A stretch of DNA of 64,000 nt from Haliotis cracherodii. Taxonomy: Eukaryota. Position numbers and translations under genes: made by a program. The DNA lies in contig NW_027266270.1 of assembly GCF_022045235.1 (NCBI RefSeq), positions 12,958,001 through 13,022,000 on the forward strand, read 5' to 3'. This document shows, one piece after another, positions 33,998 through 63,388 of this stretch (positions are counted from its first letter, which is position 1; every line of letters begins with the position of its first letter). The notes beneath the pieces were generated by a model that was not told the origin of the DNA, made no database searches, and was given only the letters and a program-made list of their open reading frames with translations.

Positions 33998-34270
33998 GAC
34001 CCGTGAAGATCCGGGGTAGAATAGGTCTACAGCAACTCATTTTTGCCGTGAAAGGTGACTATGCTTGTCGTAAAAGGCGACTAACGTGATCGGTTGGTAA
34101 GGCTCCTAAATTGGTTGATGCATGTCATCGATTCCAATTGCATGGATCGATGCTCATGATATCAATCACTGGATTGTCTGGTCCAGACTCGATTAATTAC
34201 AGACCGCCGTCATATAGCTGGATTATTGCTGTGTGCGGCGTAAAGCAACAAACCAACCAACTAACCAACT
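33998..34270 (+). mobile_element. Full-length family D retroposon with TSD
   Basis: TSD AAATGCTGAA at 33988-33997 and 34271-34280; empty site in the paralogous flank near 28040. Confidence 0.92.
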
Positions 34271-36777: not shown

Positions 36778-38662
36778 TTAAATAAAAAACGTTTGTTATT
36801 TTCCTGAAAATATATCATGCAATAGGTTGTAAGGTTATGGAAGAAATTATTCAATCGTTTAATTTTGTTTTCCTTGTCGAAAAAGCTTTATATTTCAGTG
36901 GTTATTCAAATATTCGGATTTAATAAAACGGAGATAGGGAAGATCCATGTGATTTGAATATTTCACCATGGCCAACAAACTGTTCATTTTGGCCATATTA
37001 CTGAACAAACTATCTATTTAAACAAGCCTACGCCCCGCCACCATCAATATACATCAAATGGATGTTTCTGATTCTGATTCTAGGTATCCTCTTTTAATCT
37101 TCCGGATAGTTGGAATTCTCTCGAGTAATACGTTTCTGAGTTGTGCTGTAATATACCTGTTAATGCAGGATGAGAATCAATATCAACAATATAAAGTATA
37201 TGAGACATATGGACCACGTACTGGTTAGTTAAGATTCCTTTTCAGGAACAGATGAATAAATGTGGTTCCAATCTGAATTATGTTGTGTTAGTATTTTGCA
37301 AGAATGGTGACATCAATTCAAAGAAGAAAGACGGGGAAATTAGACAAGGATGACGCAGCCAATGCATTGTTCATAGGCAACATTGTTCCTATGATCGTGG
37401 GTTGGAACCCCAGATTCGCCTGATTATTTTTTTTTATTTGTCAGCACTGTTCCCGTGCTCGTGTGTTTCACCCAAGTTTTAAAGCCTGCATCATTGCTTT
37501 TCTCCCACATCTCCGCCTGGAACGCTGTAATATAACTGAAATACTGTTTAAGTTGTGTTAAACAAATACACACTTACTTAAAGGATTCTTAAAAAGGTTA
37601 CTACACAGTGACGATTCCGATCTCGACGATGTTTTGCATAGACATCATATAGACTGGTATGCTGGTCATTTGCGTATTATGTGTCATAATTACAGAGTAG
37701 ATATGGAATTAATGTTTCAGCTGTCACAGTAAAACGTGCAGTCATAATTACCGTAAAGTTACACCACGTCCATATGATACAGTAAATGCTCAAATCGCAA
37801 TGTACAAGTAAATTATTTTAAGATAATATTTAAGACTTTTATAATGAGATGTTATAATACTTCTTATGACGAAATGTGCCCAGTAGAAGGATCGAATTTG
37901 GGCATAAACTTTTCTGTGAAATACCGTTACGTCAGTCAATGCACGGACACTAGCACAGTATCCCTAAATTCGTTTGTGTGACATATCAAAGAGGAGAAGC
38001 AATGAAAGAGTGCATCGAAGTTCAGTTTTATGACATTTTCAATTTCCATGAACGTCTAAAATATTGGTAAGCTGTTGTAATATTTATTGTGGAATATACA
38101 TGTAAAATAAATCAAATAGTGAATGTAAAATGTAAAATAATTATTATATTTTAGTGTGCATTTAAAAACAAATGTGTCATAAATAAGAAATATGCGAACA
38201 AACAACAGTCAGGCCCACAAGACGATAACGAACCAATTCATAAGTACGTTCCTTCAAAACTGATAATAACTATAATCAAAGAAAATATAGCTGCATAGAT
38301 TAGAATTGACATATCCTTATCACTGTTATGCATTAATTATTAAATATAATCGTCAGTGAGTGAAAAAGAAATATTCTTCATTGCTTTATAGTTGTAAATG
38401 ACATGAATATAGTGATCAGTTCCAAAGCAAGACCTTCAATCAAATTAAGGATTAACTTGCACAAAACTGGATGTGTAAATATTGTATTTGCATACCCTTT
38501 TTAACATACAAAAGTGCTCGCAGTGTGACATACCGTCGATTTAACAGAAAATCGATTGTCCCATACCATCATGTGAGGTGAGGCAGGTGAGGCAGGTGAG
38601 GCGAGGTGGAATGGGGTTTAACGTAGCGTCCAAGGTTATTGCACTTCTTGCACTTATATAGC

Positions 38663-38711
<49 letters not shown>

Positions 38712-38726
38712 GGGGGGGGGGGGGGG

Positions 38727-41637
38727 GGGGTCTGACTTTGGCGGAGGGCAGAAATGGATGCATGACTGATGAAGGACGGGAGGTACAGTCTGACTGTGAT
38801 GGACAGAAAGGAGAGTCTGACTGTGATGAAGGGCAGGAAGGAATATCTGACTGTGATGAAGGACGGGAAGGAGAGCCTGACCGTGATGAATGACAGGAAG
38901 GAGAGCCTGACCGTGATGAATGACAGGAAAGAGAGCCTGGCCGTGATGAAGAAGAAGAGGAAGTAATGTCTGACTGTGATGAAGGAAAGGAATAAATGTC
39001 TAACTGTGATGAAGGACAGGAAGGAGCGTCTGACTTTGACGAAGGACAGAAATGGATGCCTGACTGATGAAGGACGGGGGGTACAGTCTGACCGTGATGG
39101 ACAGAAAGGAGCGTCTGACTGTGATAAAGGACAGGAAGGAGAGCCTGACCGTGATGAAGGACGGGAAGGAATATCTGACTGTGATGAAGGACAGGAAGGA
39201 GAGTCTGACTGTGATGAAGGACGGGAAGGAATATCTGACTGTGATGAAGGACAGGAAGGAGAGCCTGACTGTGATGGACAGAAAGGAGCGTCTGACTGTG
39301 ATAAAGGACAGGAAGGAGAGCCTGACCGTTATGAAGAAGAAGAGGAAGTAATGTCTGACTGATAAAGGACAGGAATGAATGTCTGACTGTGATGAAGGAC
39401 AGAAAGTCGAGTCTGACTGTGATGAAGGAAGGAGTGCCTGACCGTGATGAATGACAGGAAGGAGAGCCTGATTGTGATGAAGAAGAAGAGGAAGTAATGT
39501 CTGACTGTGATGAAGGACAGGAATGAATGTCTAACTGTGATATGAAGGACAGGAAGGAGCGTCTGACTGTGATGAAGGACAGGATGGATGCCTGACTGAT
39601 GAAGGACGGGAGGTACAGTCTGACAGTTTTGGACAGAAAGGAGAGCCTGACTGTGATGGACAGAAAGGAGCGTCTAACTGTGATGAAGGACAGGAAGGAG
39701 AGCCTGACCGTGATGAAGAAGAAAAGGAAGTAATGTCTGAATGTGATAAAGGACAGGAATGAATGTCTGACTGTGATGAAGGACAGGAAGGAGAGTCTGA
39801 CTGTGATGAAGGAGGGGAAGGAATATCTGACTCTGATGAAGGACAGGGATGAATGTCTTCCTGTGATGAAGGACAGGAAGGAGAGCCTGACCGTGATGAA
39901 GGACAGGAAGGAGCGTCTGGCCGTGATGAAGGACAGGAAGAAGATACTGATCATGATGAATGACAGGAAGGAGTGTCTGATCGTAATGAAAGACAGGAAT
40001 GATCGTCTGACTGACATTAAGGACAGGAAGGAATGTCTTACTGTGATGAAGAACATGAAGGAGTGTCTGACTGTGATGAAGGACAGGATGGATGCCTGAC
40101 TGATGAAGGACGGGAGGTACAGTCTGACAGTGATGGACAGAAAGGAGAGCCTGACTGTGATGAAGGACAGGAAGGAGAGCCTGAGCGTGATGAAGAAGAA
40201 GAGGAAGTAATGTCTGACTGTGATGAAGGACAGGAAGGAGAGTCTGACTGTGATGAAGGACAGGAAGGAGAGCCTGAGCGTGATGAAGAAGAAGAGGAAG
40301 TAATGTCTGACTGTGATGAAGGACAGGAAGGAGAGTCTGACTGTGATGAAGGACGGGAAGGAATATCTGACTGTGATGAAGGACAGGAAGGAGAGTCTGA
40401 CTGTGATGAAGGACAGGAAGGAGTGCCTGACCGTGATGAATGACAGGAAGGAGAGCCCGACTGTGATGAAGAAGAGGAAGTAATGTCTGCCTGTGATGAA
40501 GGACAGGAAGGAGAATCTGACTGTGATGAAGGACAGGAATGAATGTTTGCCTGTGATGAAGGACAGGAAGGAATGTCTGACTGTGATGAAGGACAGGAAG
40601 GAGTGTCTGACTGTGTTGAAGGACAGGATGGATGCCTGACTGATGAAGGACGGGAGGTACAGTCTGACTGTGATGGACAGAAAGGAGCGTCTGACTGTGA
40701 TAAAGGACAGGAAGGAGAGTCTGACTGTGATGAAGGACGGGAAGGAATATCTGACTGTGATGAAGGACAGGAAGGAGAGTCTGACTGTGATGAAGGACAG
40801 GAAGGAGTGCCTGACCGTGATGAATGACAGGAAGGAAAGCCCGACCGTGATGAAGAAGAGGAAGTAATGTCTGTCTGTGATGAAGGACAGGAATGAATGT
40901 CTGCCTGTGATGAAGGACAGGAATGAATGTCTGCCTGTGATGAAGGACAGGAAGGAATGTCTGACTGTGATGAAGGACAGGAATGAATGTCTGCCTGTGA
41001 TGAAGGACAGGAATGAATGTTTGCCTGTGATGAAGGACAGGAAGGAATGTCTGACTGTGATGAAGGACAGGAAGGAGTGTCTGACTGTGATGAAGGACAG
41101 GATTGATGCCTGACTGATGAAGGACGGGAGGTACAGTCTGTACTGTGATGGACAGAAAGGAGCGTCTGACTGTGATAAAGGACAGGAAGGAGAGCCTGAC
41201 CGTGACGAAGAAGAGGAAGTAATGTCTGACTGTGATGAAGGGCAGGAATGAATGTTTGCCTGTGATAAAGGACGGGAAGGAATGTCTGACCGTAATGAAG
41301 GACAGGAACGAGCGTCTGACTGTGATGAAGGACAGGAAGGAATGTCTCACTGTGATGAAGGACAGGAAGGAGTGTCTGACTGTGATGAAGGACAGGATGG
41401 ATGCCTGACTGATGAAGGACGGGAGGTACAGTCTGACTGTGATGGACAGAAAGGAGAGCCTGACTGGGATGGACAGAAAGGAGCGTCTAACTGGGATGAA
41501 GGACAGGAAGGAGAGCCTGACCGTGATGAAGAAGAGGTGGTAGTAATGTCTGACTGTGATGAAGGACAGGAATGAATGTCTGACTGTGATGAAGGACAGG
41601 AAGGAGAGCCTGACCGTGATGAAGAAAAAGAGGAAGT
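38727..41637. repeat. Purine-rich ~30-bp minisatellite with higher-order variants
   Basis: Unit TCTGACTGTGATGAAGGACAGGAAGGAGAG with recurring ~27-34-bp variants; preceded by (GT)n and poly-G. Confidence 0.97.
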
Positions 41638-42499
41638 GCAGGAGAGATGGTCTCCCCGACGACCCCGCGCTGAATATAGAGACCATTTCTAGATCTCGTT
41701 TCTTCACTCTCCAGGTTTCGCTGAATCGTTCACGAGTGTCTTGCTACTGAATAGTCTCGTTCGAAACTCAGGTTTCGTCAGTAAGTGGTTTTCGGGAGAT
41801 GGTTCGATCTAGATTCTGGCTTAGTCTTGTTGTACTGAACTAAACTTAGTTACTAAGGTTTGTAATACTCAGTTTTGCTGGTAATCCAGGGATAACCAAC
41901 CTTCCTGTGATATTGTCTAGCTATAAGTCTGAGTGACTTATTTTAGGGATAGACCGTCTGTGTTTATTTCCCGTTATTTTACCCAGCTGAGATTATTCAT
42001 TCATCATTGAGTTAATTGACTCAGGTGGTAATCGGCCGCAACCGACTTACTTGGCTGTCTATGCATCTGATCACTATCTTGTCAGAGTGTTGTTTTAACT
42101 ACTCCTTCTATTGCCGTAATATAATTGTTTAGCTTAATCTTTCTGATCATTCAGTTCCGACGTTCATACAGTTTGGCCCTCACTCTATGAAGGTTCATAC
42201 CCCAATGAACTCACTCAAAGTGAAAGTTATTTATTAAATGAATGACAAGTCTACTGACAAAACCTACGACATGCGCGAAAACTGTGACATAAAATCAAAG
42301 TACAGTAAAACTGATCTACAGCAACAACTCGAATAAATGAAAACCGTGAGAGAGACAAACGAGCATGTGATGGCATACAATTTTCTATTGTAAATCAAGT
42401 TCACTCACTTCTATTTGTCCTAACCGCCGTCGCTTCTGAAACCACCACTCACCCCCGCCCGGAGAATTGCCCGTGCCGTCGATAGCCAGGGTAACGCCA

Positions 42500-44096: not shown

Positions 44097-46305
44097 ATGT
44101 GCACGTTGTCTCCAAAATCCGTATTCATTACGGGTGCCAATAGGGGTTTGGGGCTGGAATTTGTGAAGCACTTTCTGCGTCTAGCGAATCCCCCTACCCA
44201 CCTGTTCGCAGCCTGTAGACAGCCGGACCAGGCCACGGAGTTGACGCAGCTAGCGAGCGAAAATGGAAGTATTCGCGTGGTAAAGCTGGATGTAAGACAG
44301 GATGAAGAAATTGCTGCGGCTGTGGCGGAGGTGCAGAAAGTTGTTGGGGATGATGGACTCAATCTGCTGCTGAACAACGCCGGTGTGAACCAACAGGAAC
44401 AAGGCATCGACCAAGTGACACGGGAGAAGATGAATTTTCACCTCGACTGCAATGTTACCGGTAGGTTAATTTATAGATGAAAGATGATTGCCTGTTTTTT
44501 TTACATTCAGCCGACGCTTGGCAGGAGTATTGCTGTGTAGCGCCTGGCAACAAATCCTCTAATTATTATGCAAATTCTGTGAGTGGTGGGGTTCGACGTG
44601 CTTTCCCTTTTCGCGAACACCTGGTGTCATCACTGATTTTCTGTTATCAATTCATGTATTTGTGAGAGCTATTTTGCCTGTGACGTACAATAGAATATGT
44701 TTCCTCGGATAATCGAGACTGCATTGTTATTCTCTGGCGTTGACTTTACATGTTACGTATGTGTCTAGATGATTCTCTTGGCATGTGATTTCTTGACTTT
44801 ATGGTCCATTATATTATTATTGAAGCATAGCCAATGAACTCATTACCTTGAGAGGGGCGGTCGGGTAGCCTTGTGGTTAAAGCGTTCGCTCGTCACGCAG
44901 AAGACCCGGGTTCGATTCCCGACATGGGTACAATGTGTGAAGCCCATTTCTGGTGTCCCCCGCCGTGATATTGCTGGAATATTGCTGAAAGCGGCGTAAA
45001 ACCATACTCACTCACTCATTACCTTGAGATTATACTGCTTCATATTGATTACATATAACAAGACATGCATTCATAAGCTAAATTGGACTCGGTCTCCTGC
45101 TGATAATACTTTGATTGTCTTTTTAAATTAGTTGCCTAAATAAAAACAAATTACAAAATATTCAAGTTTGAAATAACCCAAACCTGAAATGTAAGATAAT
45201 GTCTATTACATCATGCTTATAAATATTCCTTACTGACGTATATGTCGAGGCAAGTGGTGTTTAGATGACATGTATGAGGGTATAGAAATATTGTAACATT
45301 TCGACAATAGTATTGTCTTTTGAAGCCGTTATGTCACAAACACTGTGTTATATTGCCCGAGGTCTCTTCACCCGCAACAAGATGTAGGTAATATATGTGG
45401 TCTAGTTGTCTCAAGTGCTGACACTCTATCAGACCGGTGCGCTCTGCATGGGTTTTATTCTTCCCGATTATGCCCTTTGCTCTGTCAAAACGTGTGCCGT
45501 GCCAGTGGTTTGTTTGTTGTTTAACGTTACACTCAGCAATATTACAGCTATATGACGGCGGTCTGTAAAAAATGGAGTGTGGACCACACAGTTCAGTGAT
45601 TGATATCATGAGCATCGATCCACGCAACTGGGATGACATGCATCAATCAAGTCAACGAGCCTCACCACCCAACCGGTGGGGTTGGGTGGGGTGGGGTTGG
45701 GTGGGATTTGGTTTGGCAGCTAGTCAGCTGCAACTGCAATACCAGATTTAAACAAATTATAATTATGAGCCTAAATATTTCGATAACGATGCCCCCCTAC
45801 CCCCCCCCCCACACACACCATCCCTGATATCAAGAGTGATGTTTTTGTTCGGCAATCAATGAGAAAGGTGGCTATATATATCAAGACAAGTTCTTTTTCA
45901 GCCCCACTGTTGGTTTGTAAAGCGTTTCTTCCCACACTGAGACGTGCCGCAGACAAGACAGAGTTCAGCTGCAGCAGAGCGGCCATCATCAATCTCTCTT
46001 CTGTCTTGAGCCTTATCAACTACGTCAACAAGAAAAACGATTTCCGCTACCCTTACAACAGCTCAAAGTGTGCCCTCAACATGGTGACCGATATTCTCGC
46101 GAGAGAAGTTTCCCCGGACGGGGTGTTGGTGGCAGGCATCCACCCCGGGTGGGTCAGGACCGACATGGGAGGTCCTAACGGAATGATAGATAAGGAAGAA
46201 AGTATTTCCAAGTGTATGAATACATTTGCAGCGATGAATAAAGATTCGTCAGGGTTGCTGTATTCATACACAGGAGATATCTTTGAATGGAATTCCACGC
46301 CCTAG
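44097..46305 (+). CDS. C-factor/sniffer-like SDR, copy 3; exons 44097-44460 + 45902-46305, 255 aa
   Basis: Same motifs and phase-1 GT-AG intron. Confidence 0.95.
44854..45013 (+). mobile_element. Full-length SINE family B (tRNA-Asp-like head) with TSD
   Basis: A/B boxes, GTC anticodon-like loop (GCTCGTCACGC); 16-bp TSD ACTCATTACCTTGAGA at 44838-44853 and 45014-45029; absent from the copy 2 intron (~35460). Other copies at 52834-52992(-), 53547-53708(-) and 61159-61293(+). Confidence 0.93.
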
Positions 46306-50292: not shown

Positions 50293-51236
50293 TTTTTGCG
50301 ATGCGACCTTTCGTTACAGATGCATATGACCAGTTAAGGTGCTTATAAGGTACTGGTATCTGTACCCAACCGTCGTATCAAAATGTTATTTGTTTTTACA
50401 TTTATTTGTTAATAACATACTCGGCAATATTCAGCTCAATGACGCCGACCCGAAAATAATAGAATCTGGATCATACAAACCAGTGACTGATATTGTAAGC
50501 ATTGTTTCAGGCCGTCGGGGTTCGCTGATACGCACTCAACTAGGTCAGCGAGTCTTCCTACATGATCAATTAAGTCGCCCTCTACCCCTGAAGTTCCGGG
50601 GTAGAATAGGTCTTCAGCAACCCATGCTTCATGATGTCAATCACTGGATTGTCTGGTCCAGACTCGATTACTTACAGACTGCCGTCATATAACTGGAATA
50701 TTGCTGAGTGCGGCGTTAAACAAGAATTGAAACAAACAAACTTAACTGATACTACAGCTTCTAAATGTCACTTCAAAAATACATGCATAGATTTATATAC
50801 ACGCTTATTCCATATGACTTAATTTAACAATTGTGCCCATTCATTATATGTATCTTGAAATGCCGATACCTCAAACGAAATTATAGTATTAATAGCCAGT
50901 AGATATGGTAAGTATGTGCGATAGCTCGTGAACAACAATGCTACGAATATCCATGTGTATGATATGTACGTATCCATAGGCACACTTATCTTGACCCTCA
51001 TCCACGTGTGATTGACTCAACTGCCATATCGTATATCTCTATACATCAGACATAGGTATTAACAGTTAAATGTTGACGGTATTTTCCATACAAATCATCA
51101 GATTTGAGACCATTTAACGTAGCTCAAACTTCAGCAAGGATTATGTATATTACCTGATTGGCCTTAGAGGACATACAACATGGGAGGGACACAGTCAGGT
51201 GAGATGTAACGTCTTAACGTCGCGTATGTAGGTTAG

Positions 51237-51499
51237 TGTTTGTTTGTTGTGTAACGCCGTACTCAGCAATATTCCAACTATGTGACGGCAGTCGGTAAAT
51301 AATCGAGTCCGGACCAGACAATCCAGTGATTGACATCATGAGCATCGATCTACGAAATTGGGATACGATGACATACATCAACCAAGTCAGCAAGATTGAC
51401 CCCCCGATCCCGTTTGTTGCCATTTACGACAAGCATAGTCGCTTTTTACGGCAAGCATGGGTTGCTGAAGACCTATTCGACCCCGGATCTTCACGGGTC
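51237..51499 (-). mobile_element. Full-length family D retroposon
   Basis: Ends CTTCACGGGTC on the + strand. Confidence 0.9.
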
Positions 51500-54319
51500 T
51501 TACAAAATATGGATACGTTGCATACATCATCTAAGTCATCGAGCCTTGCCACCTGATCCCGTTAGTCGCCTCTTACGCATGTATGGGTTGCTGATGACCA
51601 AGACCTGATTTTCAGGTGAACTTTTGATTTGTCTTTGCATGTGTATCATCTGGTATCATCTGGAATCATCTGGTATCATCTGGTATCATCTCCATTTGAC
51701 AGTGATTCATAAACACAAGTTCACGATAAAGTCGGAATCGTACAATCGACTCCTCCTTTTGCAGAGATTTCTTATGAATATGGAATGGGTTCTGTCGTTT
51801 GTATTTAGACCAACAATCGAAACAGGGCACATCTGGGATTTGAACTCGCTGTCAGTGATTCATGGAACAACTGAAGGGACGCAATCACTGCGACAAGATT
51901 CATATAAGGTACACCGCGGTACGATGACATATTATCAAACATGTCACGATCGTGTAGCTATCTCTTAAGCACGATACAATATACTTCTGGTTCATCGATC
52001 ACTTGATCGTCTAGTTTGTTTACAGGCTGACGGAATACTGCGGTGCGGCGTCAGGCAATAAATATTTACTTTTTTATTCAAATTGTATGAATGGCGGGTG
52101 CTTCCGGTAGGTCAGATATGCTTTTCCTTTGCGCGAACACCTGGTGTCATCACTGATTTTCAGCGATCCATTCATTAAATTTTCATATTTATTTTGCCCT
52201 TTACGTCAAATGGCATCTGTTTCAGCTGATAGTCTAGGCTGGTTATTCTCTAGCATTAACAATTTATATTTACATATATATTGAGGCTAGTCTAACCAGT
52301 AATTCATGGAAATTGGATCTGTCCTACATGTATGTGTTATAGGAGCCTGCGTTAGTCGGTTACTAAATTGGTAGCTCATGCAAGCAATCACTGTTTTCCG
52401 CCATTCAAGACTTCAGACGTTCGATTCCAGACCCGAATAGATCGCCCACACGCCACGCATACCCGAAGAGCTGGCTAAGCTTGGTTAGGGTGAAGGTGTG
52501 ACTAGGTTGTGTCACCGTCCCCCGATGTTGTGGTTCGAACCGCGGGTTTGTCTGGCCCAGACTCACAAACACAAACAAACTCACTCTAATCTATTTTTAC
52601 AAGGAGTCTTTTCCTTGCGATCTGATCAAAGGTACTCCATACTGAGATGGGGCTGTATCGTATTGAAGGAATCGTAACTTGGTCAATAAATTGATGAAAC
52701 AGTGGTGACGTGACTTCAAATTTTAACTGAATCACTCATCATTATTTGACTTTTGATCCCTTTAGTGTTGATCGATTCAGTTGCTTTCTCATATTTCAGC
52801 ACTATCCACATCGAAGATACTGTCTGATAATAAGTGAGTGAGTGAGTATGGTTTTACGCCGATTTTAGCAATATTCCAGCAATATCACGGCAGGGGACAC
52901 TAGAAATGGGCTTCAAACATTGTACCCATGTGGGAAATCGAACCTGGGTCTTCGGCGTGACGAGCGAACGCTTTAATCACAAGGCTACCCCTCACTCATT
53001 CATCGTTATCTCCATACTTAAAACGATGTGCCGGTTTTTTCAGGGAAGCGATCTTCACAGCCTCTTCTATATGGCGGTAAGAAGTCTTTAATTTCCTTAA
53101 TCTTATTCAAATACTACTATAATCGTCCACGCAAAATTTTACTTGAGAGGCTGAGAAAAGTAACATGAAGTAGGCCAAACTATGTCAGATGTATCAAACC
53201 TATTCCAGAGCACGCGCTAGTGTTCTGGTGTAGTTGCATGCTTCTACGACCAAGCACGTGATGACTCAGGTTGGAAAATAAAAAACTGGCATTGAGAATT
53301 CAAGTAAAAATATTCATATCGTAGTTAGCTAAATGAACGCCCCTACGTATATCAAGCCACCCTGAGTTGAGTCTATAATGTTAGGCAGGTAGAAATTGTG
53401 ACTACAAACACTTCATTTTAATGTAATTATGTATTTCTATGGATCTTACCACTGATCATTGAGAACTCAAGTACATTGTATGTTACTCTGTCATTTATAT
53501 TTATTGAGTTATAATGTTGGCATGAAACATTTTAATGAACAAAGTCAGTGAGTAGGTATGGTTTTACGCCGCTTTGGGCAATATTCTAGCAATATCATGG
53601 AGGGGGACACCAGAAACGGGCATCACACGTTGTTCCTATGTTGGGAATCGAACCCGGGTCTTCGGCGTGACGAGCGAACGCTTTAACGACTCGGCTTCCC
53701 CGTTGCCCCAAAGAAAAAAGTAGTAAACACGAATGTTCAGTATGTACCTGTATCTTTTCCCTATTTGCATCCATCGGTTCTTCCTTAAACGCTTATTAAT
53801 TTTTTATTGCACGTCCCCGTTCGAACGATATGAATTGAAATAAATAAAATAGCTTCCCGGTCAGTATAAGCTACATGTACATATGAAATGGGATACCAAG
53901 ATGAATACGTCATATTTCTAAGTAGTTCAGCTCTGCACTGTATTTGTCTGTTTAGTTAATTATAATAAGGTGCTTTTGATTGTGTTTATCTTAAATACTT
54001 TATTTATGTACGTACATTGTACATGTACATTAGATATAAATAGTTTCATTCCTCGGATCACCTTGCCATTGACACGGCAGAGTAAAGACCATACTGACAT
54101 TTATAACTTCTACTATATACAGTACCTGGTTTTGTTATAACGGGGTGATAGTGACCTTATAACAGGGTGATAGTGTTATCTACATTTTATCTGAACAGCG
54201 GTAGCAACTGTAAGCAACACCGGTCTTGTTAGATAAGAAGGGTAAATACAGCTTCACTGTAGGATTATTATTATTTAATCATATAATACTGCTTAAAATC
54301 TTATCAACCTCATTTACAG

Positions 54320-57300
54320 ACGAGTATGACACCCCAACAGCTTCGACCCTGTACTGCTGTTGTCTTGGAAGAAAAATAAAACTGCCCATAAAGTATGGAA
54401 GTGACCAAAAACAACAAGCATATCGCTTGCAGGAATACCCCATGTTGATAGATCCAGGTACATTTATCAACCCCTTACATATTTACTCTATGAAGATGAA
54501 GTCAGGAATGTGATCTACCCCTCACACATGCACTCTCTGTTGGTGGATCGTCTCCTTACACGAGTATTTCATGGTGATAGATCCAGGGGTATTATTTATC
54601 CCTTACACATATATCCCATGTTGATAGAATCAGATACACTATCTATCCCTTACATATATACCCCATGTTCATAGATCCAGGTAACTTATCTATCCCTTAC
54701 ATGTATACCCCGTGTTAATAGATCCAGGTATATTATATATTCCTTACATATATACCTTATGTTAATAGAAACAGGTACATTATCTATCCATTACATATAT
54801 ACCTTACGTTGATAGATCCTTATAAGTTATCTTTCCCTTACATATATATCCCATGTTGATAGATCCATGTATATTATCTATCCCTTACATATATATCCCA
54901 TGTTGATAGATCCATGTATATTATCTATCCCTTACATATACCCCATGTTGATAGATCCATATAAGTTATCTATCCCTTACATATATGCCCCATGTTGATA
55001 GATCCAAGAAAATTATCTATCCCTTACATATATACCCCATGTTGATAGATACAGGTACATTATCTATCCCTCACATATGTAAACATGTTGATAGATCCAT
55101 GTACATTATCTATCCCTTACATATATACCCCATGTTGATAGATCCAGGTACATGATCTTTCTTTTACATATATACCCCATGTTCATAGATCCAGGTACAT
55201 TATTTACATCTTACATATATACCCCATGTTGATAGATCCAGGTACATTATCTATCCCTTACATATATACCCTTGTTGATAGATCCAGGTATATTATATAT
55301 CTCTCACATATATACCCCGTGTTCATAGATCCAGCGGGGGCACAGGTGGCCCAGTCGTCTAAGGCGCCGCGATTCGCTGTGCAGAGTTGCGTCCCCTGGA
55401 TACGCCAGAAACCTATGATTGTGGGTTCGAATCCCGGTTCGCCCCCATTATGTTTCTAGGTTTGTCAGCACCATACCCGTGCACGTGGGTTTCACCGAAG
55501 TAGTAAACGTCTGAGACCTGCATCACTTTCCTCCCACATTAAGCTGACACGCCGTGATATAACTGGAATAATGTTAAAAGCGGCGTTAAACCCAACTCAC
55601 TCACTCACTCATAGATCCAGGAGCATTATCTATTCCTTGCATATATACCTTATGTAAATAGACCCAGGTACATTATCTATCCCTTACATATATACCCCAT
55701 GTTGATAGATCCATATAAGTTATCTTTCCCTTACATATAGACCCCATGTTGATAGATCCAGGTACATTATCTATCCCTTACATGTATGACCCGTGTTGAT
55801 AAATCCAGGTATATTATATATCCCTTACATATAAAGCCCGTGTTCATAGATCCCGGAGCATTATCTTTTCCTTGCATATATACCCCCGTGTTGATAGATT
55901 TATGTACATTATCTATCCCTTACATATATACCCATGTTGATAGATCCAGATAACTTATCTATCCCTTACATATATGCCCGTGTTGATAGGTCCAGGTATA
56001 TTATATATCCCTTACATATATACCCCATGCTGATAGATCCTGGTGCATTATCTATCCCTTACATATATACTTGTGTTGATAGATCCAAGTACATGATCTA
56101 TCCCTTACATATATACCCCATGCTGATATATCCTGTTGCATTATCTTTCCCTTACATATATACTTGTGTTGATAGATCCAGGTGCATTATCTATCCCCAG
56201 GTGCATTATCTATACCCAATGTTGATAAATCCAGATACATTATCTATCCCTTAGATATATACCCATGTTCATAGATCCAGGTGCATTATCTATGTCTTAC
56301 ATAATTATATACCCTGTGTTGATAGATCCAGGTACTTTTTCTATCCCTTACATATATACCCATGTTGATAGATCCAGGTATATTATATATCCCTTACATG
56401 TATACCCCGTGTTCATAGATCCAGGAGCATTATCTATTCCTTGCATATATAACTTATGTAAATAGACCCAGGTACATTATCTATCCCTTACATATATACC
56501 CATGTTGATAGATCCAGGTAACTTATCCATCCCTTACACATATACCCCGTGTTGATAGATCCAGGTTCATTGTCTATCTCTTACAGATATTACCCATGTT
56601 GATAGATCCATATAAGTTATCTCTCCCTTACATATATACTTGTGTTGATAGATCCAGGTACATTATCTATCCCTTACATATATACCCCATGCTGATAGAT
56701 CCTGGTGCATTATCTATCCCTTACATATATACTTGTGCTGATAGATCCAGGTGCATTATCTATCCCTTACATATATACCCCATGTTGATAAATCCAGATA
56801 CATTATCTATCCCTTAGATATATACCCATGTTCATAGATCCAGGTACATTATCTATGTCTTACATATATACCCTGTGCTGATAGATCCAGGTACTTTTTC
56901 TATCCCTTACATATATACCCATGTTCATAGATCCAGGTACATTATCTATCTCTTACATAAATACCCATGATGATAGATCCAGGTGCATTATCTATCCCTT
57001 ACATATACATGTATACCCTATGTTGATAAAGACCAAGGTACATTATCTATCTCTTACATATATACCCCGTGTTGATAGGCCCAGGTACATTAACTATCTC
57101 TTACATATACGTGTATACCCTATGTTGATAGACCCAGGTACATGATCTTTTCCTTACATATATACCCCATGCTGATCCAGGCACATTATCTATCCCTTTC
57201 ATATATACCCTATGTTGATGGATCAAGATAAATTACATGAGTACCCCAATTTTATATTTCCGAAAGGGACATGCACATTTTATATGAAAGAAAGTATGAA

Positions 57301-58294
57301 TATGTCAAAATAAAGATTGGGTGGTGCTTCACTCTTGTCCAGGTGTATATATCATTATTGGGAGTACCCTCTTCCAACAGTCGCTTTCCGGGTCCACTCT
57401 GCTGTTGCTGATAAGCGTTTTGGAAAGGCCATGATCAGGTTTGTTGAGCGTTCTGGACACGTGTCGCTCCAAGACACCGAAACCGATGACGTTACAGCGG
57501 TCAGTCCTCTAATTGTCTTCTGTCTCAACAACAGTTCAGTTGACGCAGATGCAGGCAGAGCTCTCAGCGAGGCTAGAGGTCAGCTTAAGACAAGTAACAT
57601 CTCAAAGCATGAATGTTTCATATAAACAAGATAACATTTACCAAGATTGTATTTCACGAGAATATATTCTAAAATGTTTCAAGCCATTTGTATTCGATAC
57701 AAAATGATTTATAATAAAACCAGAAGCATGACAGAAAATCTAAAGACAGGCCAGATAGAGACAGGAATTTACACTGTTTTATTATATATTTCCAGATAAA
57801 GAAAACAAATCATCACCAAATTAATAATAATAACCTTTACTTTCTGTTCCTGGTTAGAAGAGACCATTTACGCATTAAATGTTTGGTTGCGATATTGACG
57901 TTCGGATTGCATATAAATAATATGTATCATGCTTTAAATGCTGAAGCTTAATATAGGACCACTTTCAAGATTATCCAGATGCCTTTAATGTTTGTAACGC
58001 TATACAAAACGTATTCCGTTCACGTTGATTTGGAGTATGAAAAGTGATGACCTTTATGTTCGTCTGTTTTCAGAGGGTAATGATGTGTTTCTGGTGGTGA
58101 TCAAAAATGTAAACCCAAGCTCAACCTACAACAACACCCTCAGTCTCTCTGCTAAGAACAGGCGCCGCATTGGTGGGTGTGGAATACTTACATACTCTAC
58201 GGATTCCAGGAAGTTCCAGGAAACAGATGACAACATGGACATGTTAAGGCGATTACGTCACTTCTTACTGGACGCAGTTGTTGAAATTGATTAA
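54320..58294 (+). CDS. 3' part of uncharacterised gene X1 (TIR-like alpha/beta domain); exons 54320-54392, 57343-57578, 58074-58294
   Basis: Canonical AG/GT sites with matching phases (1-2, 2-1, 1-stop) give one open frame: EYDTPTASTLYCCCLGRKIKLPIK-CIYHYWEYPLPTVAFRVHS...SPLIVFC...EAR-EGNDVFLVVIK...LRHFLLDAVVEID*. Paralogous exon pair at 61620-63388. Confidence refers to the exons; the fold is inferred. Confidence 0.72.
54438..57230. repeat. 46-47-bp intronic minisatellite
   Basis: Unit CCCCATGTTGATAGATCCAGGTACATTATCTATCCCTTACATATATA. Confidence 0.97.
55335..55610 (+). mobile_element. Full-length SINE family A inserted in the minisatellite
   Basis: 12-bp TSD TCATAGATCCAG at 55323-55334 and 55609-55620. 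Confidence 0.95.
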
Positions 58295-59096
58295 GGACTT
58301 AGTCTTTGCATAAACATTTAAAACGACGTGCTCCAAGAAACTGTCGCTCGACAATCAGTTATGTGCAAGCCTTATGGCTATGATCTTAAAAGACGACAGA
58401 CATTTGTCGTTTGCTTTATACGTATTGTGATGACAAAAACTGATGTTTAATCTTTAAGAATAATTTACAGAGGCATTAATTGTAAATTAATGTACATCCG
58501 ATCTCTTTACTCTAAAATGTACCAGAAATCTAGCTTACACGATGTAGATCATTGGGATCGCGTACGTGTGAATGATTGTATATTTGCATGCATTGTGACA
58601 TACATTACATTGTTTCTGTCTGTGATTGAGTGAGTTCGTGTACCAGGGTTCATTGTACAGCTGGTATTTCAAACCTACATGTATATGAAACGAAATGGGC
58701 TCTGCTATCTGTGCGTGTATTAACTCAATTCCATGTTCTTAATGTCCCTCTGAAAAATATAATTTGGTCGCGTATGAGTTATTTCAGGAATAAACCCTGC
58801 ATTTAAAATCAGTTTGCGTCGCATTGGTGAACATATATTTACATATATCATTGACTTTTATATTTTGAATTAATTTACCTGTATTATATCAATTAACGGA
58901 ATGACTATGACGAATCGTTTTCATGGTTTTATCACATAAAATTTTACATTAAAGTTTTCACCGTGATCTACAATGTACCACGAACAAAATTTACACAAAT
59001 GATGATATGTAGGTGCCGATCATCTCGATATAAACATACTCTGTTGTCAATAACACATTCGCCTTTTTGTTTCGTAATAAATTATATTATTTTAAT

Positions 59097-59364
59097 GTTT
59101 GTTTGTTTATTTGTTTGTTGTTTAACGCCGCAGTATCCCAGGTATATGATGGCGGTCTGTAAATAATCGAGTCTGGTCCAGACAAGCCAGTGATTGACAT
59201 CATGAGCATCGATCCACCGCATTTGGGATACGGTGACATGCATCAGCAAAGTCAGCGAGCCTGACCACCCGATCCCGTTAGTTGTCTCTTGCGACAAGCA
59301 TAGTCGCCTTTTAGCTCAAGAATGGGTTGCTGAAGACCTATTCTACCCCGGATCTTCACGGGTC
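59097..59364 (-). mobile_element. Full-length family D retroposon with TSD
   Basis: Flanked by ATATTATTTTAAT on both sides. Confidence 0.9.
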
Positions 59365-60641
59365 AAATATTATTTTAATAACTTAAAACGGCTTTGTGAT
59401 AATCATTTTGTGGTGGAAAATCACTGTTGTTGCAATTGCGTCATTTATTCTCTGTTCTGTGGTTACATCTGCATTCTAAACATATCTGTGTTGCACATTT
59501 ACATAATATATTCAACACGGTTTGGATTATCGGAGGTTCCAAGCCAGTAAAACATACCTCTGATACCTCTGATACATTCAAACAACCACACACAATTGCA
59601 GATGAACGTACTCTTCTATGCTTATGCTTTTGCTTGTTATTAATATTTTCAATCCCGGTAGTTTAACAGCTGATATAAACAATTGGACTTTTAAAATGGG
59701 AATGTAAGGCCACTAGACAATTTAAATGCACGTTCGAGAAAACAATGTGGGTTTTTACTCGATTATAAACGACATCGAGAAACCATACATTTCACATTCA
59801 CAGTGTTATATTACCCTACACTGTCTTATACTATAATAATGAATAAATAATAAATGTTTTTGGTCGTCTTCAAAGATCTTTGCTCTATTCGATAACACCT
59901 TATACATACAAATACTACTTATTTCCATCAAGCTTGAATAGATGTCTTCCCTCCAACGTTCTTTGAAAGCCATGTTTTATATATCGAAAAATTATACATA
60001 CAGTAGAATATGTGTATCTATGCCAATAAGTAATTGTATCAACAGAATCCATAAATTGTGTCTACTTTGTCAAAATCCATGAGTTCGCTGCATTATGACG
60101 TCATTTCTCATTACGTCATTTTGGCATAATACGAAGTGACGTGACGTCAGTCCTGTTTTTCGCCATTGGGAAGATATGCATCGATCGATTGCTGGTGTTA
60201 GAATTATGCGTAAAATATACTTGTCTGTACATTCACATTTCGTATTAAGCGCATAGTATAGGTATCATGTGTCAAGTCTGTCCCTTCCACTGGAAAAGAA
60301 ATTTGATATGACGATACAGGTGACCTTAACGCGTATTGTTTACGTATCAGCATCTTATCTGAACAATGTGATTTCAAAGGTCCCTTACACAATACAATCG
60401 CTAATACCGAGGTAAGCATGACATCTATTTTCCTTCTTGTAACTATGCGTTGTTTAAATTTGACAACGAGGACATAACACAGTATTTTGGTTTCACTGCA
60501 TATATGTTCATGGAGGCAGTAAGAATCCGTGTATAAACTTAAGCATGTGCCATGCCATGCAATGTTACAGTGGTAGCGTGTCAAGTTTGTTTATGCGGGA
60601 GTGTCCTTTTATCTGTTGACCTCACAATGAATCTTCGCAGC

Positions 60642-60770
60642 TTGGATAAAGCATGACTGTGACACCCCCCTGGATGAAGCATAACTGTGACACACCCCTC
60701 GGATGAAGCATGGCTGTGACACACCCCTTGTATAAAGCACGACCGTGACACTCCCCTTGGCTGAAACATG
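60642..60770. repeat. Short ~29-bp tandem repeat (4 units)
   Basis: GGATrAAGCATGACTGTGACACmCCCyT repeated. Confidence 0.85.
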
Positions 60771-60924
60771 GGTAGCTCAACATCAGGTGATGCATTGTGC
60801 TGAAGTTCTTTAATCAAGATCCTTCACACAGGGAATTTGACATAAGCTAAATAAGTGTACAAAAGTTAAATCAGCTTGTAAATCACACTCCTGCATGTAT
60901 ACATGTATATTGTTCATGATGATA

Positions 60925-61137
60925 AGCGTCCCTTGAACACGCCAGAAACCTATGATTGTGGGTTCGAATCCCGGTTCGCCCCCATTATGTTTCTAGGTTT
61001 GTCAGCACCATACCCGTGCTCGTGGGTAAACATCTGAGACCTACATCACTTCTGGCTTTCCTCCCACATTAAGCTGAGACGCTATGATATAACTGGAATA
61101 ATGTTAAAAGTGGCGTTAAACCCAACTCACTCACTCA
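60925..61137 (+). mobile_element. SINE family A, 5'-truncated
   Basis: B box, core and (ACTC)n tail. Confidence 0.88.
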
Positions 61138-61619
61138 TTTACTCACACATGGTTATAAGGGGTGGCGGGGTAGCCTGGCCTCGTCACACCGAGGTTTGAT
61201 TCCCAAAATGGGTACAATATGTGAAGCTTGTTTTTAATGCCCCCGCCGTGATATTACTGTGATATTGCTAAAAGCGGGGCAACTCACTCACTCATAATGA
61301 TAAACGGTCTCATAACACACCTTGTTTATTGGCAACAAGGAATACACGTGTATTCACACAATGCATATTCCTTCATGATCATGATCACTGTGGTGTATAC
61401 AAATACCGGTTAAATGTTTAGTTATATTTCATAATTCATGTGTTTGAATATGGCGTGGGAGGAAAGCCAGAGGATATATAGGGTGTAGACGTTTACCTTG
61501 GGTCATCGTATATCGTATTCACCTCAGATATATCTCAAACACTTGTGTAACGATGTTCAGTTGACATAAGACAAATCAGTTCATTGGGAAACGTGCAGTA
61601 AAATAAACATGAATTTTAG

Positions 61620-63388
61620 TTTCATATTATGCGAAGGAAGAATCGACCCTGATTAAGAAGGTAAAAGACAAAGTCAGGCGAAAGTGTAAGCTGAATCTGA
61701 AAAAGGTGTCAGCCCGTTTTCAAGCCAGCCCCCTACTTCTTTTCTGCGAGGTCACAACTACCATCGATAAGGCTGTCAATGACATCGTTAAAGAAGCTAG
61801 AGGTATCATTTCATATTGAATTCTTGACATGCACAATTCAACGAAGAATACCCATACGCACAATGGCATTAAATAAATTAGAATTTGATTTCATTTCATA
61901 ACAACACATAACACATGACTTACAAATTGTTGTCTACTTGGCTTTGAAACTTAGGGACCGACCATTTTATATTCTGGGATGGGGGTGATGACTAAGATTA
62001 AAAAAGAAATTGTCCTAGAGAATGCTTAAAAAATAAATATGCTTCAACCTGTCAAAACAGGACATTTGTCTGTCACTAATTATAAAATGCATTGTTGCAA
62101 TATGTTGTTTATTTATTTATTTTTTTAAAAAGTAGTAATTGGCCTAATACAAAAATAGAGAGAATATCCCATGCGACGAGTGAAATATCATGCTTCTCTC
62201 ATCAAGTAACGGGGAACAGGTGATATTTTCATGAGATGAGACGAAAAATTATATTTCACTCGACACATGGAATATCCTATTTATTATATACTTTTTGTGT
62301 AGTTGGCTACCGGAAAATTGAATTATTTCATAACAAATCGGAAACCTTGAAACGTAAAATGTCCCTACCTAACACACAGGGTCGTTTCACCATCCCTTGT
62401 AAGTGCGACTTTAAATTAATTTAAATTAAAATCTGAAAAAATATAAACAAAAGTAACAAAAAAATATTTGATGTCAAGTAACAAATGTTGCGCCTTTTGG
62501 AATGAACAGCCTCGATTAACGAGTTAAATGTGAATTTACAGTTTACAACAAAACAATTTCAAGAGTAATATTTTCCACCACTCGAAGCAATATTACATGT
62601 AACGCCATAAATAACCATCTGTCACTATTTTGCCTTGTCAATGCGGAAGTCAACAGTTTGTGTACGGGCTAGACAATTGCGATAAAGGGAGCTAATTGGC
62701 GGGCAGGTTACTCTCGTAAGACAATAGTTCCGTCGAAGTGTAATGTTCACTGCAGTGAAATATTAAGTCTGATGTTCAGTGTTTTTGTTCACTGCAGTAA
62801 AATATCAAATGTTATGTTCACTGCGATGAAAATACCTCTTTTCTGAACTTCAAATTAATATGATTTTGCAACTGTAGCTGAACACTTATTACTTACCCAT
62901 ACAGAATCCTAACACCTTCCCCGAATATTTAATGATCGGTCCCTCACAAACGCTAATTAGGAGGCCTGGTTGTCTACTCTGCTTTGAAATTAATTACAAA
63001 AGAATACCGCAAAAATACCAGAACCAGCTCCTTTACCTTCAGTCATAATGGACACTCGTTACTATTGCAAATCTTTGATATAATTCTCCTGTTACTACGT
63101 TCATTGCAGGTGGCGATGATGTTTTTGTGGTCACGGTTAAACTCAGCGATAGACACCCAGGAAAAAACAAGCATTTGTCCGATTTCATAGCGGAAAGCAC
63201 AAGGAGATTAATTGGAGACGCTTGTGTGTTCTTCTTTGACATAAACCTTGCATCAACTGATTTCCAAAATGACAATAAAATTGCCTTTTATGGAATAAAA
63301 CGGTTCATGGCAGATGTCAATCCAGCTGATAGACATATGATACTACCTCATGTCACTTTTCAGAGACATCCCTTCCTCAATGAGCCAG
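61620..63388 (+). CDS. Internal exons of uncharacterised gene X2 (paralog of X1); exons 61620-61802 and 63110-63388, gene incomplete
   Basis: (V)SYYAKEESTLIKKVKDKVRRKCKLNLKKVSARFQASPLLLFCEVTTTIDKAVNDIVKEAR|GGDDVFVVTVK...STRRLIGDACVFFF...FQNDNKIAFYGIKRFMAD...NEP|. Same phase-1 intron after EAR as in X1. Confidence 0.7.

Follow-up and report, generated by a model that had tools for sequence, protein, structure and literature searches.

Two neighbouring genes of the black abalone encode a small orphan alpha/beta domain, in proteins that are probably tied to membranes

The window of Haliotis cracherodii (black abalone) DNA analysed here, a stretch of 64,000 nucleotides, contains two neighbouring expressed genes that both belong to one small orphan family. 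The family is a small undescribed alpha/beta domain that is expressed and kept in a few snail lineages, and nothing marks the domain as TIR or immune. The proteins carrying it are probably tethered to membranes, judging from their sequence motifs. The domain measures about 140 residues, and every copy is split by an intron of phase 1 immediately ahead of strand 4. When Pfam, PADLOC, NCBIfam and PDB sequences were searched with family peptides, no match to any described family was obtained; for Pfam, the four exon peptides and the proteins P0001, P0002, P0003 and P0005 were used at E<=10. The peptides from which a first-pass annotation had started are real, spliced, homologous and without a match in these four collections.

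Profiles of the first and second exon of the domain (exon A and exon B) were run against the 1.18-Gb genome, revealing five strong matches apiece and a whole-genome total of five domain copies in three genes, all with open frames. Against 1.84 billion representatives, the exon-B profile gave seven matches at E<=0.001, five of them family members and the other two long repetitive proteins with 6-7 short stretches. A full-domain profile search added H. rufescens, H. asinina and Gigantopelta aegis as carriers, so that the relatives found by profile searches come from four Haliotis species, Gigantopelta and one ENA sequence, and from no others. The orthologue in H. asinina is 84% identical, and an orthologue in Gigantopelta is still recognisable. 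The genes had been announced as hidden, but RefSeq already models gene 1 in H. cracherodii and orthologues of both genes, under the name of uncharacterized proteins. As to the uncharacterised fish proteins that the first-pass annotation had compared with the domain, two chordate clusters of hypothetical proteins appeared in the Atlas at 0.89, which is taken as a lead only.

The structure of both genes is summarized in Table 1, the spliced evidence being provided by contigs of four RNA-type public runs (X1, X2, X6 and X12). The two exon pairs of the first-pass annotation, their common phase-1 intron after ..AR and their aligned motifs can all be read from the sequence, and both proposed junctions, 57578/58074 and 61802/63110, are present in spliced contigs. 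The contig joints lie at 57576/58072 and 61800/63108, with two letters common to both sides of each, and therefore the GT..AG introns are 57579-58073 and 61803-63109. In both X1 and X12, one contig spans the joint of copy 1 (as two pieces of the same record), and that of copy 2 is listed for X1, X2 and X6.

Table 1. Exons and untranslated region of the two genes (positions of the window)
Feature	Position	Strand	Evidence
Gene 1 exon 1, coding part	51180..51198	+	P0003 residues 1-6 map here
Gene 1 exon 2	53044..53076	+	P0003 peptide maps at 53046; AG/GT borders read
Gene 1 exon 3	54320..54457	+	P0003 peptide maps at 54322
Gene 1 exon 4	57381..57578	+	spliced contigs X1, X12; P0003 residues 64 onward
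Gene 1 exon 5, coding part	58074..58294	+	joint 57576/58072; C-terminus of P0003
Gene 1 3'UTR	58295..59060	+	contigs of X1, X2, X6, X12
Gene 2 exon 1	60639..60786	+	joint 60784->61618 (GT..AG, cut +2) in X1, X12
Gene 2 exon 2	61620..61802	+	contig pieces 61618-61800 in X1, X2, X6
Gene 2 exon 3	63110..63388	+	joint 61800->63108 in X1, X2, X6

Gene 1 consists of five exons (51180-58294), the last two of which are copy 1. Its product of 202 aa is identical to the RefSeq "uncharacterized protein" P0003 of H. cracherodii, and begins with about 60 disordered residues (pLDDT below 50 for residues 1-58) ahead of a single domain. The coding part of exon 1 opens at the start codon and encodes MGGTQS, which is of myristoylation type, before a phase-1 GT donor; the 5'UTR is estimated at 180 nt upstream of this part. 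Exon 2 has 33 nt and is in phase 1 on both sides, and exon 3 codes for the disordered part of the N-terminus, including a CCC cluster. In X12, one contig extends 372 nt upstream from 57378, a length that corresponds to exons 3 and 2 plus about 201 nt. Thus, copy 1 is an exon pair as described, but not a stand-alone one, as three more exons precede it (Table 1). Its claimed start at 57343 had to be moved as well: the match begins at 57378 both in the spliced X1 and X12 contigs and in unspliced X2 and X6 pieces, and since three letters are common with the upstream exon, the exon starts at 57381. Exon 4 codes for beta1-alpha1-beta2-alpha2-beta3-alpha3 of the domain and exon 5 for beta4, a long loop, beta5 and alpha5 before the stop codon; contigs of all four runs end at 59042-59065 in the 3'UTR. 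A 47-bp satellite fills the intron after exon 3, and the last codons of this exon together with the donor form one satellite unit.

Gene 2 encodes two tandem domains in about 317 aa, of which copy 2 is domain 1, with domain 2 lying just past the window end. Its 5'UTR is built of ~30-nt repeats, the ATG is found at 60768 and the product starts with MGSSTS, again of myristoylation type and shared with the orthologues P0015 and P0013, before a phase-1 donor closes exon 1. Exon 2 codes for the first half of domain 1 and exon 3 for the second half plus a linker. Here too the exon pair stood, whereas position 63388, given as its end, is an internal splice donor of phase 1 from which the gene appears to run on to a third domain copy, located outside the window at a distance of ~0.7-1.7 kb from its end (L006 721-908 and 1388-1671, with a stop). 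Continuation into domain 2 is suggested by an X1 contig of 2812 nt that reaches 2251 nt past 63339, by the fitting phases and by the two-domain orthologue models P0015 and P0013, which read straight across the junction at 63388.

The two copies are highly diverged (pairwise identity between family copies is 22-25%) and their proposed homology was borne out. In BLASTP the first exons match with E 4e-5 (9/25 identical) and the second exons with E 7e-5 (17/68 identical), and when orthologues were added, hhalign aligned the profiles of the first-domain (d1) and second-domain (d2) types over 128 columns with a probability of 99.2% and E 7e-20. In the tree, the d1 clade stands apart from a clade of d2 plus gene 1 with support 98/98, which places the two-domain layout before the gene duplication. 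For copy 1, the 11 differences listed from related runs comprise 8 synonymous and 3 non-synonymous ones, a count that is indicative only, because it covers a subset of the sequence differences (122 lie outside the list) and the runs represent related taxa; for copy 2, the list has five differences in four codons, and the residue is altered in three of these codons. Purifying selection on the family is what we largely infer from these sequences. The idea of a fast-evolving innate-immune family does not agree with five domain copies in three genes and with the 8:3 ratio among the listed differences of copy 1.

Predicted structures place P0003 residues 60-202 at block-mean pLDDT values of 78-92, and both domains of P0015 adopt the same predicted fold (mean pLDDT 77.6). 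The DSSP order of elements, E-H-E-(H)-E-H-E-(h)-E-H, was recovered in two independent models with domain pLDDT of about 80-90, in agreement with the five-strand (beta-alpha)5 flavodoxin-like order and the succession of strands and helices that had been proposed. By the element order of these models, the domain belongs to the flavodoxin-like fold class, a three-layer alpha/beta/alpha arrangement of five beta-alpha units. Flavodoxins make up most of the Foldseek list, the neighbours being flavodoxin, REC and TIR folds, and the structural Z of TIR structures ties with those of receiver domains, GTPases and flavodoxins. As far as this comparison of folds goes, an inert interaction module, a diverged enzyme and a nucleotide binder fit it alike.

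Conserved columns were read from an alignment of 12 domains. The invariant residues are R-x-G-x-D-V before strand 4, P-L at strand 3 and an Asn at helix 5, and they look structural or interaction-related. The acidic residue noted after the central strand is an Asp at the start of helix 3 in 10/12 domains; this Asp and a Ser after strand 5 are on the side where flavodoxin-like enzyme sheets bind their ligand. The beta1-alpha1 loop is variable, with indels, and no glycine-rich or phosphate-binding loop follows strand 1. A CheY-like receiver domain was also considered and rejected, since neither the acidic pair after beta1, nor the Asp at the end of beta3, nor the Lys after beta5 is conserved in the 12 domains, so that the acidic pocket and Lys of receivers have no conserved counterpart in the family.

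The third gene lies on another chromosome (C11) and contains both domains too. Between them runs a P/Q-rich linker of ~220 residues with six DPF and two FxDxF-type motifs and an acidic tail. P0009 and P0001 have DPF six times plus FDDFF and FADAF, FEDAW is present in P0016 and FDDAW in P0005 and P0014. The DPF motifs sit within a tandem repeat of ~14 residues; the Gigantopelta orthologue has none of them, its only such motifs being of FEDAW type. A cluster of clathrin-adaptor type (DPF/W, FxDxF, acidic-Phe, disordered region) was found in the C11 paralogue only, neither window gene having an adaptor-binding linker. The rule for N-myristoylation asks for Met-Gly, then at position 3 a residue that is small or uncharged, and Ser/Thr at position 6. 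It fits gene 1 (MGGTQSG) and its H. asinina orthologue (MGGSQSG), as well as gene 2 and the orthologues of gene 2 in H. rufescens and H. rubra (MGSSTSV), and does not fit the C11 gene, which starts MDPNF... The MGGTQS and MGSSTS starts and the CCC cluster are kept in orthologues. Motifs for lipidation and adaptor binding, being short, may occur by chance.

The reading towards which we lean, if only slightly, is that the proteins are non-enzymatic adaptors or scaffolds close to the membrane, on its cytosolic face, built from an interaction domain. The MGxxxS start of genes 1 and 2 would provide a putative N-myristoylation and thus membrane anchoring, to which the CCC cluster of gene 1, of the kind that is palmitoylated, would add a second putative lipid anchor, while the DPF/FxDxF linker and acidic tail of the C11 gene are candidates for binding to clathrin-adaptor appendages. 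The domain itself would act as a protein-protein interaction or oligomerisation module, and is taken as such because there is no phosphate-binding loop after strand 1 and the invariant residues look structural or interaction-related. DPF/FxDxF repeats are carried by the endocytic accessory proteins Eps15, epsin and AP180. The C11 linker resembles these in its motifs and acidic tail, but the protein lacks EH, ENTH and ANTH domains and has the motifs between two orphan domains, and the window genes have acylation motifs in place of the linker.

The domain could instead be a highly diverged TIR-type domain (STIR), either in membrane-anchored TIR adaptors with homotypic oligomerisation or in NAD+-cleaving enzymes, a reading that we regard as unlikely. 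The vertebrate TIR adaptor TRAM is N-myristoylated, an acidic residue follows the central strand, and hhalign put beta1-alpha1-beta2 of d1 in register with positions 7-52 of TIR_2 (E 0.0073, 5.3%). Nominally this surpasses the result for the known TIR-SEFIR pair, which was tested alongside (E 0.038, 1.4%). However, the best TIR-type score (22.2) was barely above the best of 12 reversed-profile controls (19.6), and the probabilities against in-genome TLR-TIR, TIR_2 and SEFIR profiles were 0.1-5.3%, compared to up to 2.3% for reversed controls, so that the proposed TIR/SEFIR identity was not upheld; this test has little power at such a distance, as the known TIR-SEFIR pair also fails in it. No match to TIR, TIR_2, TIR-like or SEFIR was obtained in Pfam even at E<=10, and the structural Z for TIR is equalled by the other folds mentioned above. 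TIR domains are defined by their box 1-3 and BB-loop motifs and, in NADases, by a catalytic Glu. The family differs from TIR (PF01582, TIR_2 PF13676; TIR-STING and RPS4 TIR structures) in several respects: neither sequences nor profiles show significant similarity, box motifs are missing, and a conserved Glu is lacking, the acidic residue being an Asp, present in 10/12 domains only; the beta2-beta3 (BB-loop) region is variable across the 12 domains. The copy number is also tiny, with five copies vs at least 101 canonical TIR matches in this genome. We consider it quite unlikely that the family is a new, distantly TIR-like gastropod signalling domain with fish relatives, placed at membranes by dual acylation or by the DPF linker.

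Arf proteins likewise start with MGxxxS, as the window proteins do, which would suit a degenerate small-GTPase-like pseudo-GTPase, anchored to membranes like the Arf family and serving as a nucleotide-independent scaffold. Such an origin is distinctly improbable, as GxxxxGK[ST], DxxG and NKxD occur in none of the 12 domains and the beta1-alpha1 loop varies with indels; a chance ..FGKA.. is seen in copy 1 alone. The model has ~140 residues in five beta-alpha units, whereas the matched G-domain ranges have ~170-190, so that large parts of the G domain remain unmatched; compared to small GTPases and pseudo-GTPases (LRRK2 Roc, IFT22/RABL, CENP-M, IRGQ), the family is shorter, has no G1-G5 and shows five plain beta-alpha units. 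A flavodoxin/FMN-reductase-like cofactor-binding redox module, possibly paired with the neighbouring short-chain dehydrogenases (SDR; three tandem genes at 28-46 kb of the window), is very improbable. Flavodoxins and NAD(P)H-dependent FMN reductases share the strand and helix order and are the best Foldseek neighbours, at TM 0.40-0.47 on target but with E of only 1.5e-3 to 1e-2, and NCBIfam gave a weak FMN-reductase match (E 0.021, 14.6 bits vs a cut-off of 212.5). Flavodoxins bind the FMN phosphate with the loop after strand 1, a loop that is variable in the family; nor is there a Pfam or family HMM match to flavodoxins, nothing about the lipid-anchor and DPF motifs points to a redox carrier, and no SDR is present at the paralogous C11 locus (within the 3-kb loci read). 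Finally, identity of merely 22-25% between copies might point to non-functional sequence, either pseudogenes in decay or open frames that arose by chance, which is hardly conceivable and was ruled out by the correct splicing in contigs of several runs, the open frames of all five copies, the conserved H. asinina (84%) and Gigantopelta orthologues and the synonymous excess among the differences listed.

If the adaptor or scaffold reading holds, this would be a lineage-restricted family with no Pfam model and a very common fold, sent to membranes by three devices: myristate alone, myristate together with a Cys cluster, and linear motifs that bind adaptors. As such it would be a minor addition to the domains of unknown function and a candidate Pfam entry, unsurprising to specialists. 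Were the TIR-like signalling reading true, it would represent a new metazoan adaptor family connecting endocytic membranes with innate signalling, and a tie to TIR or to the fish proteins would make the domain an old metazoan signalling module that escaped annotation.

The domain that ends gene 1 (copy 1) and the first domain of gene 2 (copy 2) are each encoded by a pair of exons, A and B, separated by a phase-1 intron that follows an Arg codon in both pairs. The spliced peptide of copy 1 reads ...SPLIVFC...EAR/(E)GNDVFLVVIK...RRRIG...FQETDDN...LRHFLLD...stop, and that of copy 2 reads ...SPLLLFC...EAR/(G)GDDVFVVTVK...RRLIG...FQNDN...KRFMAD.... When both copies were compared by pairwise BLASTP, each of the two exons showed a weak but consistent similarity (E 4e-5 and 7e-5). 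Searches with the window's sequence were run exon by exon, and the whole-protein steps used public database proteins.

Coordinates of the domain copies, their genes and the repeats and genes that surround them
Feature	Coordinates	Remarks
Gene 1, upstream exons	51180-51198, 53044-53076, 54320-54457	predicted by mapping P0003 peptides onto the window
Copy 1, exons A and B	57381-57578, 58074-58294	end of gene 1
Gene 2, 5'UTR exon	60639-60767	units of about 30 nt
Copy 2, exons A and B	61620-61802, 63110-63388	first domain of gene 2
Copy 3	L006 721-908, 1388-1671	third tandem copy, about 0.7-1.7 kb beyond the window end
47-bp satellite	54570-57235	gene 1 intron 3
Exon 3 end with donor	54440-54459	one satellite unit
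Retroposon	33998-34270	blastn query
Retroposon copies	51228-51499 (-), 59097-59364 (-)	82-84% identical to the query
SINE-like element	55335-55610, 60926-61140	distinct from the retroposon
Short-chain dehydrogenase (SDR) genes	28453-29967, 34676-36777, 44097-46305	three in tandem, two exons each
Short coding-like repeat	38569-41707 (-)	between two SDR copies

Expression was assayed by matching 6,000 nt (57340-63339) to the Logan contigs of four RNA-type runs. In the case of copy 1, single contigs of runs X1 (675 nt) and X12 (1570 nt) connected 57378-57576 with 58072 onward, with 314 and 372 extra upstream letters, respectively, and a 3' reach to about 59060. Copy 2 was covered by contigs of 2812, 2751 and 2920 nt (X1, X2 and X6), which connected 61618-61800 with 63108 onward. 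An upstream exon of gene 2, ending at 60784 (+2), was spliced to 61618 (GT..AG) in X1 and X12, and the gene 2 contig of X1 extended 2251 nt beyond 63339. Thus, both splice junctions named in the first-pass annotation were correct, and the coding nature and motifs of its two exon pairs were borne out; the first exon of copy 1 begins at 57381 and not at 57343. All introns of gene 1 are phase 1.

Copy 3 lies on L006, the sequence past the window end. As donor 63388 and acceptor 721 of L006 have the same phase (1), the two-domain orthologues P0015 and P0013 are continuous over the junction (...FLNEP-VCFYF...) and the size of the X1 contig is consistent with a five-exon mRNA, copies 2 and 3 were read as one predicted two-domain gene. 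When a poly(A) signal was looked for at its predicted 3' end (L006, about 3402), just an A-rich AAUAAU-like stretch was found, which lends weak support to that end. The 5'UTR exon is a run of four to five repeats of about 30 nt (..GGATGAAGCAT..CTGTGACAC.CCCCT..). As several of these contain upstream ATGs, uORFs may regulate how the MGSSTS frame is translated.

About 56 copies of a 47-bp satellite fill intron 3 of gene 1. The end of exon 3, comprising its last codons (..PMLIDP) and the GT donor, corresponds to one unit of this satellite, and therefore every 47-bp repeat has a potential donor site; as the H. asinina orthologue retains ..PMLMDP, this coding unit is old. One retroposon copy is located in intron 1 of gene 1 and another directly 3' of the gene; blastn with this retroposon gave 26 rows in the window, including the query's own site, and its summed contig depth in RNA-type runs was >100,000. 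The SINE-like element was also present at very high depth in these runs, and its copy at 60926, in intron 1 of gene 2, is 5'-truncated, as its loose-end consensus matches a fuller copy within the satellite (about 55361-55390). Regarding the SDR genes, the middle copy matched Pfam adh_short on its two exons (E 3e-16 and 6e-10), and no link between the SDR genes of the window and the orphan-domain genes was found. The repeat lying between two of the SDR copies forms very long open frames (peptides ..SFLSFITVRH.. and ..LLPVLHHSQT..) and could be either a minisatellite or a repetitive gene.

A search of 1.84 billion representatives with the exon-B profile (A1, five rows) matched 7 proteins at E<=0.001, five of which (P0001-P0005) belong to the family. 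The remaining two were excluded: P0006 (E 1e-4; 744 aa, highly repetitive, 7 short stretches matched) and P0007 (E 3e-4), a long protein of 1725 aa, taken as repetitive, matched in 6 short stretches. P0003 (202 aa) is the exact spliced product of gene 1, named "uncharacterized protein [Haliotis cracherodii]" by its source, and P0009 (551 aa) comes from the same species; further members are P0008 of H. asinina, 84% identical to P0003, P0015 (317 aa) and P0001 (537 aa) of H. rufescens, P0002, P0012 and P0013 of H. rubra, P0016 (480 aa) of Gigantopelta aegis, and the ENA sequences P0005, P0014 and the fragment P0004. Every one of them is labelled "uncharacterized protein" by its source. As far as these profile searches reach, the family appears to be confined to Vetigastropoda (Haliotis) and Neomphaliones (Gigantopelta and a close ENA relative).

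In the whole 1.18-Gb assembly, the exon-A profile and the exon-B profile each had exactly five strong matches, corresponding to three tandem copies on the window's contig (C7) and two on another chromosome (C11), where one gene encodes two domains with a P/Q-rich linker of about 220 residues between them. A weak match (E 0.114) at C1:8693359-8693484, which contains two stop codons, was left out of the count. In a maximum-likelihood tree built from 12 domains, all first domains fell on one side and all second domains, together with gene 1, on the other (support 98/98), and both domain types matched each other by hhalign (99.2% probability, E 7e-20). Together, the tree and this match indicate a two-domain layout that is older than the duplication behind the C7 and C11 genes.

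The proposal that the family is fast-evolving was not supported. When the copy 1 coding sequence was compared with runs from related taxa, 8 of the 11 differences were synonymous and 3 were not, counted among the best-supported differences listed (122 more exist), an excess with a binomial probability of roughly 0.002 if about 27% are synonymous under neutrality. For copy 2, five differences were listed in four codons, three of the four being residue-changing, too few to judge. Two further observations speak for constraint: an orthologue exists in Gigantopelta, and the proteins of two Haliotis species are 84% identical.

With regard to the fold, P0003 was modelled with AlphaFold2 from a 12-row alignment in which the exon translations were separate rows. 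The mean pLDDT was 70.2, with residues 1-58 below 50 and block means of 78-92 for residues 60-202, and the elements were E64-69, H75-89, E93-95, H98-103, E107-112, H117-127, E134-141, h156-159, E164-170 and H181-201. The same order was found in both domains of P0015 (16 rows, mean pLDDT 77.6), whose pTM of 0.49 leaves the inter-domain orientation undefined. Foldseek against the PDB gave a GPCR fusion construct as the single match at E<=0.001, followed mostly by flavodoxins and FMN reductases (E 1.5e-3 to 1e-2). The models and their neighbours thus agree with the flavodoxin-like order of strands and helices noticed at first pass, and the predicted fold is a flavodoxin-like (beta-alpha)5, without superfamily assignment.

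The first-pass annotation went further and likened the domain to the TIR/SEFIR type. In order to weigh this, the family was compared by hhalign with in-genome profiles of TLR-type TIR (22 unique rows from 25 loci), TIR_2 (29 from 30) and SEFIR (10 from 10). The probabilities were 0.1-1.5%, apart from the first-domain type against TIR_2, which reached 5.3% (E 0.0073) over 46 columns, in register over beta1-alpha1-beta2; the best of 12 reversed-profile controls of the family reached 2.3%, with a score of 19.6 vs. 22.2 for the best real comparison. TIR and SEFIR are known distant relatives, and while the control of TLR-TIR against TIR_2 gave 100%, that against SEFIR gave 1.4%. The test found no significant link to these in-genome profiles but is a weak one, being blind at the TIR-SEFIR distance. 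On balance, a diverged TIR-type domain seems rather improbable. Genome-wide, at least 101 TIR and at least 150 TIR_2 matches were detected, many in long, TLR-like open frames of 700-900 aa, as well as 10 SEFIR matches, with large tandem arrays of TIR-bearing genes, e.g. at C3:13.26-13.46 Mb, C45:52.5-52.6 Mb, C45:59.74-59.79 Mb and C1:3.45-3.78 Mb.

Searches of Pfam with four exon peptides and four whole database proteins gave sub-threshold noise alone (SGSH_C at 16.2 bits, Phage_int_SAM_6, Glyco_hydro_59M and Ubiquitin_DCDC1), as did PADLOC and NCBIfam, and profile A3 had 0 matches at E<=10 among PDB sequences. A homologue search with the single-exon ORF of copy 5 scored two candidates, neither at E<=1, with a length window that probably shut out full-length relatives. 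In the ESM Atlas, an unnamed mollusc cluster (0.94) and two chordate clusters of hypothetical proteins (0.89) were found, which serve as leads only, and its named clusters yielded no Pfam family. The family was not named in family libraries, among PDB sequences or in the main texts of papers (LOC numbers, XP accessions). The genes themselves are not hidden, as had been supposed, since RefSeq already has models for them; what they encode is an orphan domain family whose fold is very common.

Invariant in the 12 domains (P0003 numbering) are V64, P106, L107, R129, G131, D133, V134, V137 and N183, and near-invariant are L93, D118, D120, L125, F135, L136, G163 and S171. Flavodoxins, Rossmann folds, P-loop proteins and receiver domains have phosphate or acidic sites in the loop after strand 1, and this loop varies here in both length and sequence, which would favour an interaction module rather than an enzyme. 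A putative ligand site may still be formed by the conserved Asp pair opening helix 3 and the Ser that follows strand 5.

The N-termini of gene 1 (MGGTQSG), its H. asinina orthologue (MGGSQSG), and gene 2 with its orthologues in H. rufescens and H. rubra (MGSSTSV) fit the N-myristoylation rule. In gene 1 and the H. asinina orthologue, the disordered N-terminus also contains a CCC cluster, and a Cys cluster near a myristoylation-type start is the usual palmitoylation context. The C11 protein begins with MDPNF..., without either feature, and its linker contains six DPF motifs, FDDFF, FADAF and an acidic tail; in the relatives from Gigantopelta and ENA, FEDAW and FDDAW stand in place of the DPF-type motifs. 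In Eps15, epsin and AP180, motifs of this DPF/FxDxF type bind the appendage domains of clathrin adaptors. What these targeting features would share is recruitment to membranes on their cytosolic side.
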